Notes: generated by a model from the sequence alone, not told the origin. 64,000 bases of DNA from Octopus sinensis (GCF_006345805.1 NC_043010.1:51584001-51648000); one strand, 5' to 3'. Positions 42,661 to 63,675 are shown, numbered from the stretch's first letter. Program-made: numbers and translations.

Positions 42661-44064
42661 GTAAGTGGAATCATATTTTTCTTTGCATCTCTTTTTGATT
42701 CTCTGAGTATGATTGTTTGCAATATTGTGGCAGTAAAAAGGCGGCGAGCTAGAAGAAACGTCAGCACACCGGGCGAAATGCTTAGCGGTATTTCATCTGT
42801 CTTTACGTTCTGAGTTCAAATTCCACCGAGGTCGACTTTGCCTTTCATCCTTTCGGGATCGATTAAATAAGTACCAGTTATGCACTGGAGTTGATATAAT
42901 CGACTTAATCTGTCTGCCTGTCCTTTTTGTCTCCTCTGTGTTTAGCCCCATTGTGGGTAGTAAAGAAATAGGTATTTCGTCTGTCTTTACATTCTGAGTT
43001 CAAATTCCACTGAGGTCAACTTTGCCTTTCATCCTTTTGGGGGTCGATAAATTAAATACAAGTTGCGTACTGGGGTCGATCTAATCAACTGGCCCCCCCT
43101 TCAAAATTTCGAGCCTTGTGTCTTGAGTAGAAAAGAATATTGTTGCAGGAAAATGATAATAGAGTATCTCTGTTTCTCTCTTATCTCCATGAGACGGTAT
43201 CTAAATAGCTCTTGTCTAAATGCTTCTTGCATGCAACTGAGGTGGGGTTGCCTGAATGAGGGGAATGTTGTAAAGCCTGAATCCCCAGCCATCCCAAGAT
43301 ACAACTCTAATGACCATTCTAAATATTGCATCTATTGAGCAAATGTGTGCATGTAAAAACTCTTGTGAGTTTGTTAATTTTTGTCTTGAAGTACAACCGG
43401 AAATCCACAGTATGAGCAGCACACAAATCATTTCATTTTTAAACTAATTCAGTTAATAAAACCAGTTTACATATTTCTTTTGCATTCTATTTTTTATAAT
43501 TGTCATTTTACTTGTATCTGCTCCTTTTCTGTTTTAAAACCCATAAAAAATTATTTTTGAGTGGTTTTTAGGGTCTGGAATGAATTAATTATATTTGAGT
43601 TAATTTCAATGGGGAAAATTGATTTGTAAAATGAATAGATTGTAAAGGAGAGCTCAGAGGGCTCAGTCATGGTACAAATTAAACTCCTACTGCAAGGTAT
43701 CACTGAATATATATATTTTACAGACAAAGTAAATTTCAAACACAATAAAGCTGTAAGAACAACAGAGAAAAATTGGGTAGTTACTCTTAAAAGACAGAAA
43801 ATAATGTTGACAACAGTCAGCAATGAGAATTGAACCTGTAACGTTAAACATTATTTATGTCGTTCATCATTAAGCTAAATGGCTCCTGACAATAAGTGCC
43901 ATCAGTTTTAATGGTAAATAATAGATTTTCATATGCAAAAACATACTATAAACAAACTAAAGAAACTAATATATATGTATACACAAACACACACACATAT
44001 GCATGCACATGTGTATATAAGATACAAGGTGTAATATTAACATATTTTCAAATTGTCTTTGCAG

Positions 44065-44085
44065 AATAACAAAAGGCCGAAGAAT
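44065..44085 (+). CDS. Gene B microexon cassette 1 (21 nt): NNKRPKN
   Basis: catattttcaaattgtctttgcag|AATAACAAAAGGCCGAAGAAT|gtaagtataaacttgg. Confidence 0.7.
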
Positions 44086-45664
44086 GTAAGTATAAACTTG
44101 GAATACTTCAACTTTTCTTTTTCACATTTATTTCTAAAAAAACATCAATACAAGCAAACCAGATGAAAACGCAACGAATGTTTGGGTTGATAACGGTTGC
44201 TGTGGTGGCACGTAAAAAGCACCCACCATACTCTTGGAGTGGTTGGCGTTAGCAAGTGCATCCAGCTGTAGGAAATTTGAAAGATTGGATTGGAGCCTGG
44301 TGCAGCCTTTTGGCTTTCCAGCCCTAAGTCAAACCGTCCAACCCATGCCAGCATAGAAAGCGAATGTTAAACTATGATGATGATGATGATAAACACACAC
44401 ACACAACACATGTATATATGTATATATATATATATATATATATATATATCACACATATATATACATATATGTATAAACATACATATATATATATATATAT
44501 ATATATATATATAATATATTATATTATATATATATTATTATATATATATATACATATATATATAGAGAGAGAGAGACTGAGAGAGAGGAGGAGAGACAAA
44601 TATAAATATATATACATACACACAAACACACACACACAGATATATACACATACATACATGTCCCTTCCAGACCTAGAGTAGAGAGTTAGAGAGCTAAACA
44701 GGATTTGTGTTGTTTCAGCTTAACAAAGCTTATATTTATTCAATCCATTAACATAAGGTATGGATTTCTCAATTATTTTCCACTTAATCAGATCTGGCAT
44801 CTTTCAAATTCCATATGTAGTTAGCAAACTTAGTAGCTTTACTATTGTCCTTATGTTGGACATATGAAACTCTTAGTAGAACTTTAAGACATGTATTGTG
44901 CCCTTTAAATAAATAGTATCTCTCACCAAATGGAGTGATTGGTTTTGTTCCAGCTTAGCGAGAATTCTTGTTTTTACTTCTGTGTCTTTCTCTGTAGTTG
45001 GTCCCTATCAAGCACTTGATTAAATCTGTCTTTAATTCATCCAGCCTGAACTTTTCATTTTCTCTTTTAACTCTACCAGCATTTGTGATGTAGTCTACCT
45101 CATTGATCTTTTCTAGGTTCAAACATTTCCAATGTGCATTGAACAATGAGCTTTACACACTAAAAATCTACACAATATGTCTATTACACAATATATGTAT
45201 TGTATCTTTAAAGTTAATGTCAGAAGTTTTCTTCAGGAGTATGTAATTGCTGTAACACTCATGTTCTCCTGCTGCCAGTTTTCTTAAGATTAAATGCATT
45301 TTCATATCATCATCCCAATCTTATCACTCTTTATTGAAGATTTGTTCGTATCTTTATAGTAAGCCTCGAAGGTAACTCCTTCATCTGGTTTGTACTTGGA
45401 CTCTGTTATTGAGTTCACAGCATAAGAATTCAAGTAGAGTTCAAATTAACGAAGTAACCACATGGCTAAGCCCACGACGGGAACATTTTTTCTGCATTTC
45501 TTCATTAATTACAGTATTTGTTGCTGTAATAGTAATTGTTGTTGTTGCTTCTGATGTTATTCTTGCAGTTGTAGTTGCTGCATTTGTTATTCTTTCAGTT
45601 TTTTTTTTTACAGTTTTTGCAATTTGAGCAAACCAGTTAACATATTTTTAAATTGTCTTTGCAG

Positions 45665-45685
45665 ATATGTAAGAATTCAATACCT
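45665..45685 (+). CDS. Gene B microexon cassette 2 (21 nt): ICKNSIP
   Basis: catatttttaaattgtctttgcag|ATATGTAAGAATTCAATACCT|gtaagtataaacttg; an internal gtaaga could be a cryptic donor. Confidence 0.65.
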
Positions 45686-60750: not shown

Positions 60751-62602
60751 TGTATATATGTATGTGTGTATATATATATATATATCTATATATTATAATA
60801 TATATTATATATAATATATAATATGTATATATGATGTATATATATATATATAATATATCTATATAGGTATGTATATATATATAATGTATATTGTATACAT
60901 GTATATCTATATACATATACATTATATATATTATATATACATGTATATATAAATATATATATCTGCACACATATATAGACACACACACACACACACATAT
61001 ATATACAGGGCATCATCGACTTACGCCCATAACTGGTTCCAACTGACTGTCATAAGTTGATGAGGTTGTAAGTTAGCCTTTAGGCCTACATAGCTTTGTT
61101 TTATATTTTTACATTCTTAAGAAACATTCTGAGGTAAAAGTCATGCAAAGCATTCAGTATTATACCATTACACTGGCATTACTCAAAAATTTCGGAGTCT
61201 CAAGCAGTTGTCTTATAAACAATTATGTTTATATGTAAGTAAATCCCTAGAAGATCAGTGATCTGTGCAGAATCATTCAATCCCATGGTAATATCAAAAT
61301 TATTATGTCTATATTTTCTAGTTCACAGTTTATTGTTAAGTTCAATAAGTGTTTTCCTTGCTGCTAGGATATTATTTATCTAATTTCTGGTGAGATTAGA
61401 ATTTTCATAGCAAATATTAGAGCTTTATGAAGGAGAATAGGAGAGATAGAATGACACTAACTATGAAAGTCAAATTGCTAGAATTTAATATTCTTTTAAT
61501 CTATAAAGTTATCAAACCAGTTAATTAATTTTATAGTATTAGATCACAGGTTTATTAGATCTCTGTTTATACTAACCGATGTCATCTTATTTATAGTGAC
61601 TAGCACATACCACTCGTCATGTGGGAGGGATGTACCATAATTACTTTTATCCCTACAACACTACCACCCCAACCTGATTGCAGGATCTTCTCTTCCAAGG
61701 TATTTGGTTAATTCATTGCTGTTGGTTTCATGAAAAAAATCACCCACTACACTCCATAAAGTGTTTGGGATTACGAGGGGCAACAATCCAGAGAAAGAAT
61801 GCCAGAGCTGATAACAAAGCTTTTGAGTTGCTAGCTCTTATGAAGCTGGTCAACATGGAAGGAGGATGTTAAATGACGATAACACAATGATATATATATA
61901 TATATATATATATATAATATATATAATATATATATATATCATCATTCATCATCATCATCATTTAGCATCCGTTTTCCATGCTAGCATGGGTTGGACCTAT
62001 ATATATAATATATAAAGTTAATCCAAACAAGAAAGCACAAAAAAACACAACAAGCGAGACGTGGAACAAATATAGTATTATTGGACGCTCAGGAAAGAAG
62101 GAAAAGAGGAGGGTTTAACGTTTCGAGCAGAGCTCTTCGTTGGAAACATAGGAGAAGGAAAGATCCAGAGAAGGGAAGACAGAGGAAAAAAAATCGCCAA
62201 CGGTACACACGAGGTCACATTTTGAAATATATATATATGATATATATATATATTACAGGCAAGAAAGTAAATTTCAAACACAATAAAGCTGTAAGAACAG
62301 CAGAGTAAAAATTGGGTAATTACTCCTACACAACAGAAAAATAAGTTGACAATAGACAGCTATGGAAAGGAACCTGTTCCCTTCAGATAATAATTCAGTG
62401 CTTCACCATTAAGCAAAATGGCTCCTGACAACAATTACCATCAATTTTAATGCTAAATATTAGCTTTTCAACTGCAACAACATTTTATAAACAAACTAAG
62501 CAAATTTATATTTAAGTACACACACAACACACACGCATACACACACATATGCATGCACATGTGTTAATAAGATACTAACATATTTTCAAATTATCTTTGC
62601 AG

Positions 62603-62617
62603 ATGTGTCATACATAC
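62603..62617 (+). CDS. Gene B microexon cassette 8 (15 nt): MCHTY
   Basis: tactaacatattttcaaattatctttgcag|ATGTGTCATACATAC|gtaagtataaatttgg; textbook TACTAAC branch point. Confidence 0.65.
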
Positions 62618-63675
62618 GTAAGTATAAATTTGGAATGCTTAAATTTTTCTTTTTCACATTTGTTCATGAAATGCATAAATACAAACCAACTAGATGAAAA
62701 AGAAAAGAATGTTTGGGCTGATAATGTTAACTGCATAGTGGAGGCGCAATGGCCCAGTGGTTAGGGCAGCGGACTCGCGGTCATAGGATCACGGTTTCGA
62801 TTCCCAGACCGGGCGTTATGTGTGTTTATTGAGCGAAAACACCTAAAGCTCCACGAGGCCCCGGCAGGGGATGGTGGTGATCCCTGCTGTATTCTTTCAC
62901 CACAACTTTCTCTTGCTCTTACTTCCTGTTTCTGTTGTACCTGTATTTCAAGGGGCCGGCCTTGTCACTCTCTGTGTCACGCTGAATATCCCCGAGAACT
63001 ACGTTAAGGGTACACGTGTCTGTGGAGTGCTCAGCCACTTACACGTTAATTTCACGAGCAGGCTGTTCCGTTGATTCGGATCAATCGGAACCCTCGTCGT
63101 CGTAACCGACGGAGTGCTTCCCTAGATATCAATACCCCCACAAATAACGCAGTGTAACATGAGTTTTGTCTTTGGGTAGCGACTTTTATTCCCTATTTGC
63201 TCACTCCTAGAATGTATGAAAAATGGCTTATGTTTCCTTCAAACTTTGTGCTTGTTGTAATATTTATTCCAAGCCCCCAAAAATCCCTCTCAAACACATG
63301 GCTGTGATGCTCCCCCACTACACCTGCTCATCATCAGAGATACACATATTGTCAGCCACTAAGGGACATGCTCAAGTGGTTAAGGTCAAGATATTGAGAA
63401 GCAAATCTGGGGTACTGAGCAGAATATTTGCTACAATGCTAGTGCTACTACTACCACTACTACTACTACTACTACTACTACTACCACCACCACCACCACC
63501 ACCACCACCACCACCACCACCACCACCACCACCACACCACCACCACCACTACTACTACTACTACTACTACTACTACTACTACTACTACTACATACTTAAT
63601 TTTCACACAACCAATATGTAGATATTGTTCATTGGGTGATTGCAGCTATAAAATAAATTATATCATTTCTTACAG

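Follow-up and report, generated by a model that had tools for sequence, protein, structure and literature searches.

In some venom and reproductive genes, such as those of snake PLA2 and the conotoxins, exons evolve faster than introns. In the micro-exon genes of schistosomes, most of the coding sequence is carried by small symmetrical exons and a signal peptide is always encoded; such genes are apparently restricted to platyhelminths (PMC4350168). The microexons regulated by SRRM3/4 have UGC between the branch point and the AG of the acceptor and a strong 5' splice site (bioRxiv 10.1101/2024.09.17.613571). The yolk ferritins of gastropods are secreted, lack an iron-responsive element (IRE) and contain an insert of 42 aa without a homologue elsewhere (PMC10799875); this insert lies in the surface-exposed B-C loop and was proposed to be a receptor ligand (PMC12867339). 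The present work concerns a stretch of 64,000 nt from Octopus sinensis (GCF_006345805.1, NC_043010.1:51584001-51648000; hereafter, the window), which was matched at 100% identity to chromosome CM016872.1 of GCA_006345805.1, and an array of repeated coding microexons (cassettes) that it holds in the gene LOC115219182.

The array probably arose by tandem duplication of a coding microexon in the Octopus lineage, within a gene for a secreted ferritin-like protein, and the duplicated exons then diverged faster than the introns around them. Such an explanation combines features of known kinds, namely, the duplication of exons in tandem, secreted genes rich in microexons and the insert in a loop of secreted ferritins of molluscs. 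No paper linking such microexons to cephalopods or naming LOC115219182 was found in the literature searched. The first-pass annotation of the window, which was made from the sequence alone, had stated that no description was known; this holds for the literature searched, although the exons themselves were already present in public gene models.

Cassette exons and their host gene

The host gene of the cassettes is LOC115219182, on the + strand. Exon 3, exon 4 and the terminal 45-nt exon of the run served as the query of an exhaustive HMMER search through 1.84 billion proteins. It found XP_036364934.1 (216 aa) at E=2.6e-37, which carries the RefSeq title 'uncharacterized protein LOC115219182 [Octopus sinensis]'. 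Clustered with this protein are CAI9733177.1, an O. vulgaris protein of 259 aa, and, for O. bimaculoides, a C-terminal fragment; a second match of the scan was an orthologue from Argonauta hians. A word-indexed protein search with exon 4, the eight cassettes first counted and the 45-nt exon had returned no candidate, which was due to the index and not to absence of the gene. No further members of the family were found in 5.8 billion proteins, and no paralogue of it ('gene A') was found upstream in the window.

Both XP_036364934.1 and CAI9733177.1 carry all seven cassettes with the genomic order kept, and both full models read LSNYIQQVLKTD-NNKRP(K/R)N-ICKNSIP-KPDPTAD-KCMKPPI-ICTKTMD-L(R/K)GAEKH-MCHTY-IKAIKTAMLKFYKCK. 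The presence of the cassettes in these two models bore out the proposal of the first-pass annotation that they are real exons of a + strand gene. The source genome is of the octopus type that had been supposed, the flanking exons at 42625-42660 and 63676-63720 had been placed correctly, and the cassette translations match those listed earlier.

The 26-nt acceptor motif AACATATTTTCAAATTGTCTTTGCAG was found in eight copies at <=1 mismatch, all on the + strand, from 44039 to 62602; the chance expectation is 0. After each copy come 21 nt (15 nt in the last one) and then GT[A/G]AGTATAAA. In the MAFFT alignment, a variable block is enclosed by approximately 28 invariant bases upstream and approximately 11 invariant bases downstream. 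Pairwise identity averages 0.43 in the exon, 0.94 at -21..-1, 0.87 at +1..+42 and 0.70-0.82 further out. The motif scan and this alignment confirmed both the near-invariant acceptor and donor cores and the greater divergence of the exons, as compared with the introns, that had been noticed earlier. The homology between units extends from approximately -360 to +235, and the flanks carry a (CA)n tract at a common offset.

All units are on the + strand. Repeat unit 1 (43707..44220) contains the cassette exon at 44065-44085 (NNKRPKN); unit 2 (45636..45880), in which the upstream flank is kept at -29..-1 only, contains the exon at 45665-45685 (ICKNSIP); unit 3 (48164..48770), that at 48532-48552 (KPDPTAD); and unit 4 (50012..50320), that at 50123-50143 (KCMKPPI). 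They are followed by unit 6 (55657..55990) with the exon at 55826-55846 (ICTKTMD); unit 7 (58478..58725), in which the downstream flank is kept at about +1..+10 only, with the exon at 58694-58714 (LRGAEKH); and unit 8 (62227..62739) with the 15-nt exon at 62603-62617 (MCHTY). Cassettes 2, 4 and 6 have 12-14 of their 21 nt in common, together with a Cys codon at position 2. A ninth, degenerate copy considered at 47613 was rejected, being just a piece of the downstream motif with 3 mismatches and with neither an acceptor nor an exon upstream.

The number assigned to the fifth copy was dropped from this series for the following reason. An assembly gap of 100 N (50685..50784) lies in the intron between cassettes 4 and 5 and separates two copies of one 1.74-kb block. 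The second copy (50785..52524, +), which holds 'cassette 5' (51950-51970, KCMNPPI), aligns end to end with 48947-50684; of the 1760 columns, 13 are mismatches and 42 are gaps. In another octopus genome, that of O. vulgaris, the locus is gap-free and contains the block once and exactly seven cassettes, and in both gene models KCMKPPI occurs once and KCMNPPI never. Because the duplicate blocks abut the gap, the second genome has a single copy and the models omit KCMNPPI, the number of cassettes is seven and not eight, as had been counted at first. Cassette 5 is almost certainly an assembly artefact, either an unmerged contig overlap or a second haplotype, and the K/N difference (AAG/AAT) that separates cassettes 4 and 5 probably represents two alleles. 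The gap leaves the reading frame intact. The locus flags a false tandem duplication at a gap in the O. sinensis assembly.

The microexon run comprises nine exons, of 36 nt, six times 21 nt, 15 nt and 45 nt, all of which are multiples of 3 in length and in phase 0. The exon that follows the run encodes what would correspond to helix C of ferritins. As had been stated for the cassettes, frame 0 is the sole frame open in all copies. In composition-matched shuffles, the probability that frame 0 is open in all seven was 0.035 and that any frame is open in all seven was 0.14; by itself, the open frame is weak evidence. The microexons account for 177-222 of 780 nt of the coding sequence (23-28%) and encode an insert of 74 residues that is rich in Pro, Lys and Cys.

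Upstream of the run, exon 1 (30459..30531, +; donor GTAAGA after a final G) was located by tblastn with CAI9733177.1 at 100% identity and encodes a signal-peptide-like N-terminus. Judged by inspection, 30459-30530 codes for a signal peptide, which CAI9733177.1 also has, and the protein would accordingly be exported. Exon 2 (35851..35924, +) covers the putative ferritin helix A region, and exon 3 (141 nt, 38572..38712, +) covers what corresponds to helix B and ends where the B-C loop would begin; exon 3 is identical in O. vulgaris and has 65% protein identity to Argonauta. The run is opened by the 36-nt exon 4 (42625..42660, +), which encodes LSNYIQQVLKTD and is present in both full models, and closed by the 45-nt exon (63676..63720, +), which encodes IKAIKTAMLKFYKCK. 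LOC115219182 continues on the + strand with two exons past the window end, at window-equivalent positions 65843-65944 and 68469-68636.

Exon 2 of the O. sinensis assembly differs from that of O. vulgaris by one additional A in an A-run (A5 vs A4) and by one T missing just 5' of the donor. The length of the exon is kept, but the two indels shift nine codons and produce an in-frame TGA; they may represent a fault of the assembly or a genuine disabling allele. These indels probably explain the form of XP_036364934.1, which begins with an ATG of exon 1 that is out of frame (MDPWQV), lacks exon 2 and has no signal peptide; the RefSeq model was probably mis-started.

Relation of the encoded protein to ferritins

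LOC115219182 is probably a ferritin-fold gene, at the limit of what sequence comparison can detect. When the microexon segment was cut out of the family profile (loop-deleted profile A6), the 13 best PDB matches were all ferritins. The best of them had E=0.0078 and consisted of a single colinear alignment of query 30-148 with ferritin 41-169, in which the excision point fell directly after ferritin 'QE(V/I)A', where the B-C loop begins. With the full-length family profile, eight of the nine best PDB matches were ferritins, colinear and weak (E=0.26-0.76). Comparison with FTH1/FTL by hhalign gave E=0.067 and a probability of 0.8% over helices D-E, and tblastn of human FTH1 against the window gave nothing significant.

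In the weak ferritin alignments, the ferroxidase Glu/His positions of helices A-D are replaced. In the HMMER alignment, which is itself weak, ferritin 'DEEREH' stands opposite 'SQSYDL' in Octopus and 'RESYDL' in the profile consensus, the latter being derived mainly from Argonauta. No IRE was found in the window with Rfam. As parts of one joint explanation, the microexons probably encode a 74-residue replacement of the short ferritin B-C surface loop, and the gene, probably confined to octopods, would encode a secreted ferritin-like protein that has diverged strongly.

Divergence, splicing and origin of the array

The six cassettes of 21 nt are 40.6% identical to each other in ungapped comparison (random expectation 0.29), with a Jukes-Cantor (JC) distance of 1.18. 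The cores within +/-30 nt are 92% identical and the wider flanks 85% identical (JC 0.16), and the paralogous exons are 4-7 times more diverged than their flanks. The rates between O. sinensis and O. vulgaris were obtained from substitutions counted away from indels. They amounted to 1.04% (135/12952) in distal intron, 0.78% in the wider flank and 0.48% in the core. The rate of the wider flanks is 0.75 times that of the distal intron, and these flanks are therefore close to neutral. Since the paralogous exons are 4-7 times more diverged than these near-neutral flanks, neutral drift cannot account for the difference. The cassettes differ between the two species at 2.13% of positions (3/141: K>R, R>K and one silent change), and the other coding exons, exon 2 being left out, at 0/565 (P of 0 changes = 0.003), which marks these as constrained; the difference between the cassettes and other coding sequence is significant (Fisher P = 0.008). 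Taken together with the analogy to yolk ferritins, the divergence of the cassettes suggests that an exposed loop was under positive selection or, at the least, was freed from constraint.

The following course of events may be proposed. The middle seven microexons would stem from one 21-nt exon that was duplicated in tandem in the Octopus lineage, as the centre of a segment of approximately 0.6-1.6 kb. Thereafter, the branch point, the pyrimidine tract, the UGCAG acceptor and the GTAAGTAT donor would have remained near invariant, presumably because very short exons need strong splice signals. The wider flanks would have drifted at about the intron rate, and the 21 coding bases would have diverged 4-7 times further, with lengths in multiples of 3 and the open frame kept. 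Positive selection or relaxed constraint would have acted on an exposed loop, for which the yolk ferritin B-C insert as a receptor ligand serves as the model. The resulting mRNAs, as annotated, would have all seven cassettes in together, one alternative isoform skipping the array. If so, the locus is a clean natural example of the growth of a surface loop, in which a 7-codon exon was copied together with its splice signals, the copies outpaced the introns and the cores stayed frozen.

Several points weigh against this explanation. The ferritin homology is below the usual thresholds for sequence matches, and no Pfam ferritin domain was found in exon concatenations or proteins, even at E up to 10. 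The earlier description of a ferritin-fold gene is thus supported by the colinear loop-deleted alignment and tempered by the weakness of detection. The AlphaFold2 model of the full protein is unusable (predicted local distance difference test score, pLDDT, 40; predicted template modelling score, pTM, 0.31), being all-helical but unreliable. The in-frame stop in exon 2, if real, might mark an allele without a secreted protein. The inclusion of the cassettes is taken from two automatic annotations, which may not be fully independent. The excess of the cassettes over the intron rate between species is not significant (Poisson P = 0.18). Positive selection is not demonstrated, the pN/pS counts being tiny: in the subset of cassettes 2, 4 and 6, pN was 0.42 and pS 0.23, and frame 0 had the lowest pS; the direction agrees with that of the paralogue distances, but the counts are very small. 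Finally, Argonauta also has nine exons, which leaves room for a minor rival, in which the exons are old one-to-one orthologues and the introns of Octopus were homogenised later. The divergence may reflect the diversifying selection inferred in the first-pass annotation or relaxed constraint: the distances between paralogues, 4-7 times those of the flanks, favour acceleration, but the three changes in 141 positions between species are not significantly above the intron rate.

It is possible, though unlikely, that the cassettes diverged through relaxed constraint, as spacer residues in a disordered loop in which selection acts on length, frame and splice signals only. The likeness of the flanks would then be due to constraint on splicing elements or to homogenisation by gene conversion. 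In agreement with this, the cassette region is predicted as coil and is the least confident part of the AlphaFold2 model, with the lowest pLDDT; the rate between species (2.1%) is not significantly above that of the introns; pooled pS and pN are both near saturation; and the exon count in Argonauta is equal. However, the flanks are near neutral, yet the paralogous exons are 4-7 times more diverged, and drift cannot surpass the neutral rate. In addition, conversion tracts that spared exactly 21 nt in seven units would need selection against homogenisation of the exons. Tandem duplication with accelerated divergence of the exons is the explanation favoured over relaxed constraint.

The splice signals of the cassettes comprise a candidate branch point TTAAC at approximately -28, a pyrimidine tract, an invariant TCTTTGCAG acceptor (UGCAG) and a donor GT[A/G]AGTAT. 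The GTAAGTAT donor allows U1 pairing through position +8. In cassettes 2 and 7, in which one flank was replaced, the splice core survives beside the exon (-29..-1 and approximately 10 nt of the donor flank, respectively). The cassettes fit the features of SRRM3/4-type microexons, i.e., a length of <=27 nt, UGC before AG and a strong 5' splice site; on the basis of these motifs, an SRRM3/4-type architecture may be regarded as a lead and not as a finding.

The isoforms on record either include all cassettes (P0001 and P0005) or skip all of them (P0007 of O. vulgaris), and no isoform with partial inclusion is recorded. In P0007, exon 4 is extended by 66 nt (42661..42726, +) to a weak alternative donor, GTGGCA, and is spliced directly to the 45-nt exon. 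This isoform reads KTDVSGIIFFFASLFDSLSMIVCNI joined to IKAIK, which matches the translation of the window, and contains 22 additional hydrophobic, intron-derived residues; it may be a genuine splice variant or may have come about as a processing by-product. The O. vulgaris annotation was built from Iso-Seq, RNA-seq, protein alignments and ab initio predictions, and alternative forms were added by PASA (PMC10700109). The placement of seven 21-nt exons over 20 kb presumably drew on the transcript evidence.

The array might instead act as a generator of protein diversity, with combinatorial inclusion of the cassettes, as in schistosome micro-exon genes, or inclusion of one at a time, as in Dscam, and with many loop variants per gene. 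This appears improbable. It is true that any subset of the cassettes would remain in frame, every exon being a multiple of 3 in phase 0, that the two annotated kinds of isoform differ by the entire array and that the invariant UGC beside the AG and the very strong donor are those of SRRM3/4-regulated microexons. However, both full models include the seven cassettes together, which excludes strict mutual exclusivity, and partial inclusion is absent from the isoforms on record. P0007, with its weak cryptic donor and intron-derived residues, may be a by-product. Complementarity of the docking/selector type was not above that of shuffled controls: in a simple ungapped test, the best 14-mer pairing between the unique parts of the introns and the cassette flanks was no better than after shuffling. 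Mutually exclusive use of the Dscam type, to which the array had been likened earlier, is not supported: the annotated mRNAs carry the seven cassettes together, and no sign of docking/selector pairing was found.

It is correspondingly doubtful that varying subsets of cassettes, with up to 128 in-frame combinations, would provide a variable disulfide-bearing loop on a secreted ferritin-like scaffold. If this were true, inclusion of subsets would represent a variation system resembling that of micro-exon genes but independently arisen in a cephalopod, and the variable loop could have been fitted to a receptor or partner that evolves fast, be it in reproduction, in immunity or in prey. If the cassettes were used in combination, one could conveniently study at this locus how microexons are recognised and how splicing varies proteins in organisms other than parasites.

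The locus of the A. hians orthologue lies in BAAFZT010000037.1 (locus positions 11724-20659). It consists of a 141-nt exon, microexons of 30, 30, 24, 21, 30, 27, 21, 27 and 45 nt, and then exons of 102 and 165 nt. All nine microexons are multiples of 3, occupy the same place as in Octopus and account for approximately 210-255 nt of coding sequence. No exon-centred likeness was found among the flanks of the Argonauta microexons, and the intron flanks of the two genera could not be aligned. Because the microexon loop is shared with Argonauta and the flanks are unrelated, the loop built of microexons is old in octopods and the array with duplicated flanks belongs to the Octopus lineage. The deposited Argonauta protein begins upstream of the likely initiator Met (MAKILGLFLAVF).

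It is very unlikely that the microexons themselves are ancient orthologues, with a nine-exon loop that predates the split of Octopus and Argonauta and with flanks homogenised later in Octopus. Nine exons in multiples of 3 stand between the 141-nt and 102-nt exons in both genera, and the last two pairs look orthologous (MCHTY/EHIPMECNK and IKAIKTAMLKFYKCK/VKDLENKISDLIKNG). However, the Octopus cassettes are uniform in size (six of 21 nt), whereas the Argonauta exons vary from 21 to 30 nt; the sharing of 12-14 of 21 nt and of the second Cys codon still persists among cassettes 2, 4 and 6; and the Octopus flanks carry an inherited (CA)n tract at a common offset, whereas those of Argonauta show no similarity centred on the exon. 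The duplication of one 21-nt exon in the Octopus lineage accords better with these data than orthology does.

That the segments are not exons at all but an array of small-RNA hairpins with conserved arms and a variable loop, or introner/transposon copies with splice sites, is so improbable that it may be dismissed: RNAalifold does pair the acceptor core with the donor core around the variable 21 nt as a loop and finds a second stem downstream with two compensatory pairs, but single-sequence folds of cassettes 1-6 and 8 have energies of only -5 to -16 kcal/mol and inconsistent z values (-1.8 to +1.3), the sole fold outlier is a microsatellite stretch downstream of cassette 7, Rfam gives nothing at the array (its only match, to 5S, lies elsewhere), the segments lie in annotated coding sequences, and, as regards introners, the repeat is exon-centred and confined to the array, has no copies elsewhere in the window and lacks its conserved flank start in the intron after exon 4 and its conserved flank end in the intron before the 45-nt exon. 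An array of microRNAs, hairpins or small nucleolar RNAs was likewise rejected in view of the unstable folds and the empty Rfam search at the array. A single metagenome match (L001) to the pattern running from acceptor to donor was attributed to chance, its flanks being unrelated.

The downstream stem would lie at 44086-44200 and the equivalent positions of other units and be formed by CTTTTCTTTTTCA and TGAAAAAGAA(G/A). In cassettes 6 and 8, both partners of two base pairs have changed, and the z values, from -1.4 to +0.9, give weak support; the stem might be a splicing-regulatory structure or a product of chance.

Some further features of the window were recorded. A fragment of a reverse transcriptase (Pfam RVT_1, E=1e-09) is present at 54151-54381 (+), in the intron between cassettes 5 and 6, and in part accounts for the longer spacing between these two. 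It is adjoined by open frames at 53167-54147, and the block is colinear with O. vulgaris. The introns are largely filled with long (CA/TG)n and (TA)n tracts. A short dispersed repeat, the translation of which contains SQG(F/S), occurs in many copies (e.g., 12418-12669, 14924-15169, 32650-32874 and 40804-41052) and looks like an element of the short interspersed (SINE) type. A full-length match to 5S rRNA was found at 3786-3898 (-) (Rfam RF00001, 50.8 bits, E=1.2e-07).

Comparison with known systems

The resemblance to schistosome micro-exon genes that had been pointed out in the first-pass annotation holds in several respects. The octopod gene shares with them a run of very small exons in multiples of 3, a signal peptide, a fast-evolving mature part and skipping that keeps the frame (PMC4350168). 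It differs from them in that 23-28% of the coding sequence, and not most of it, is in microexons, and no sequence homology exists. Strict membership in this class was rejected on these two grounds, and the likeness is partial, with symmetrical exons and a signal peptide set against the low microexon share. Nevertheless, micro-exon-rich secreted genes, so far described as a speciality of flatworms, are extended by this locus to cephalopods.

The exon arrays of Dscam, Mhc and 14-3-3 are comparable in that homologous exons were produced by tandem duplication within one gene. Their exons, however, are 100-300 nt long and mutually exclusive, whereas those of the octopus are 21 nt long, are included together and are less conserved than the introns. 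With the neural and endocrine microexons regulated by SRRM3/4 (eMIC), the cassettes share a length of <=27 nt, the UGC, a very strong 5' splice site and conserved intronic flanks; the former are usually single and deeply conserved, whereas the latter are paralogous and fast-diverging. The snake PLA2 and conotoxin genes offer a parallel to the divergence pattern, with coding sequence that diverges faster than the adjacent non-coding sequence. In those genes, the pattern is seen between gene copies, whereas in the octopus it is seen between tandem exons of one gene.

The closest known relative in design appears, by analogy, to be the yolk ferritin of gastropods (Lymnaea stagnalis and Biomphalaria glabrata). 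Both proteins are molluscan, have a signal peptide and carry an insert at the B-C loop, and they are similar in length (259 aa in the octopod and 249 aa in the yolk ferritin). The octopod protein differs in being barely recognisable as a ferritin (E=0.008, no Pfam domain) and in having the ferroxidase ligands replaced in the alignment, and its insert comprises 74 aa from nine microexons, as compared with approximately 42 aa. The locus may thereby provide a link to the unexplained B-C loop insert of the secreted (yolk) ferritins of molluscs.

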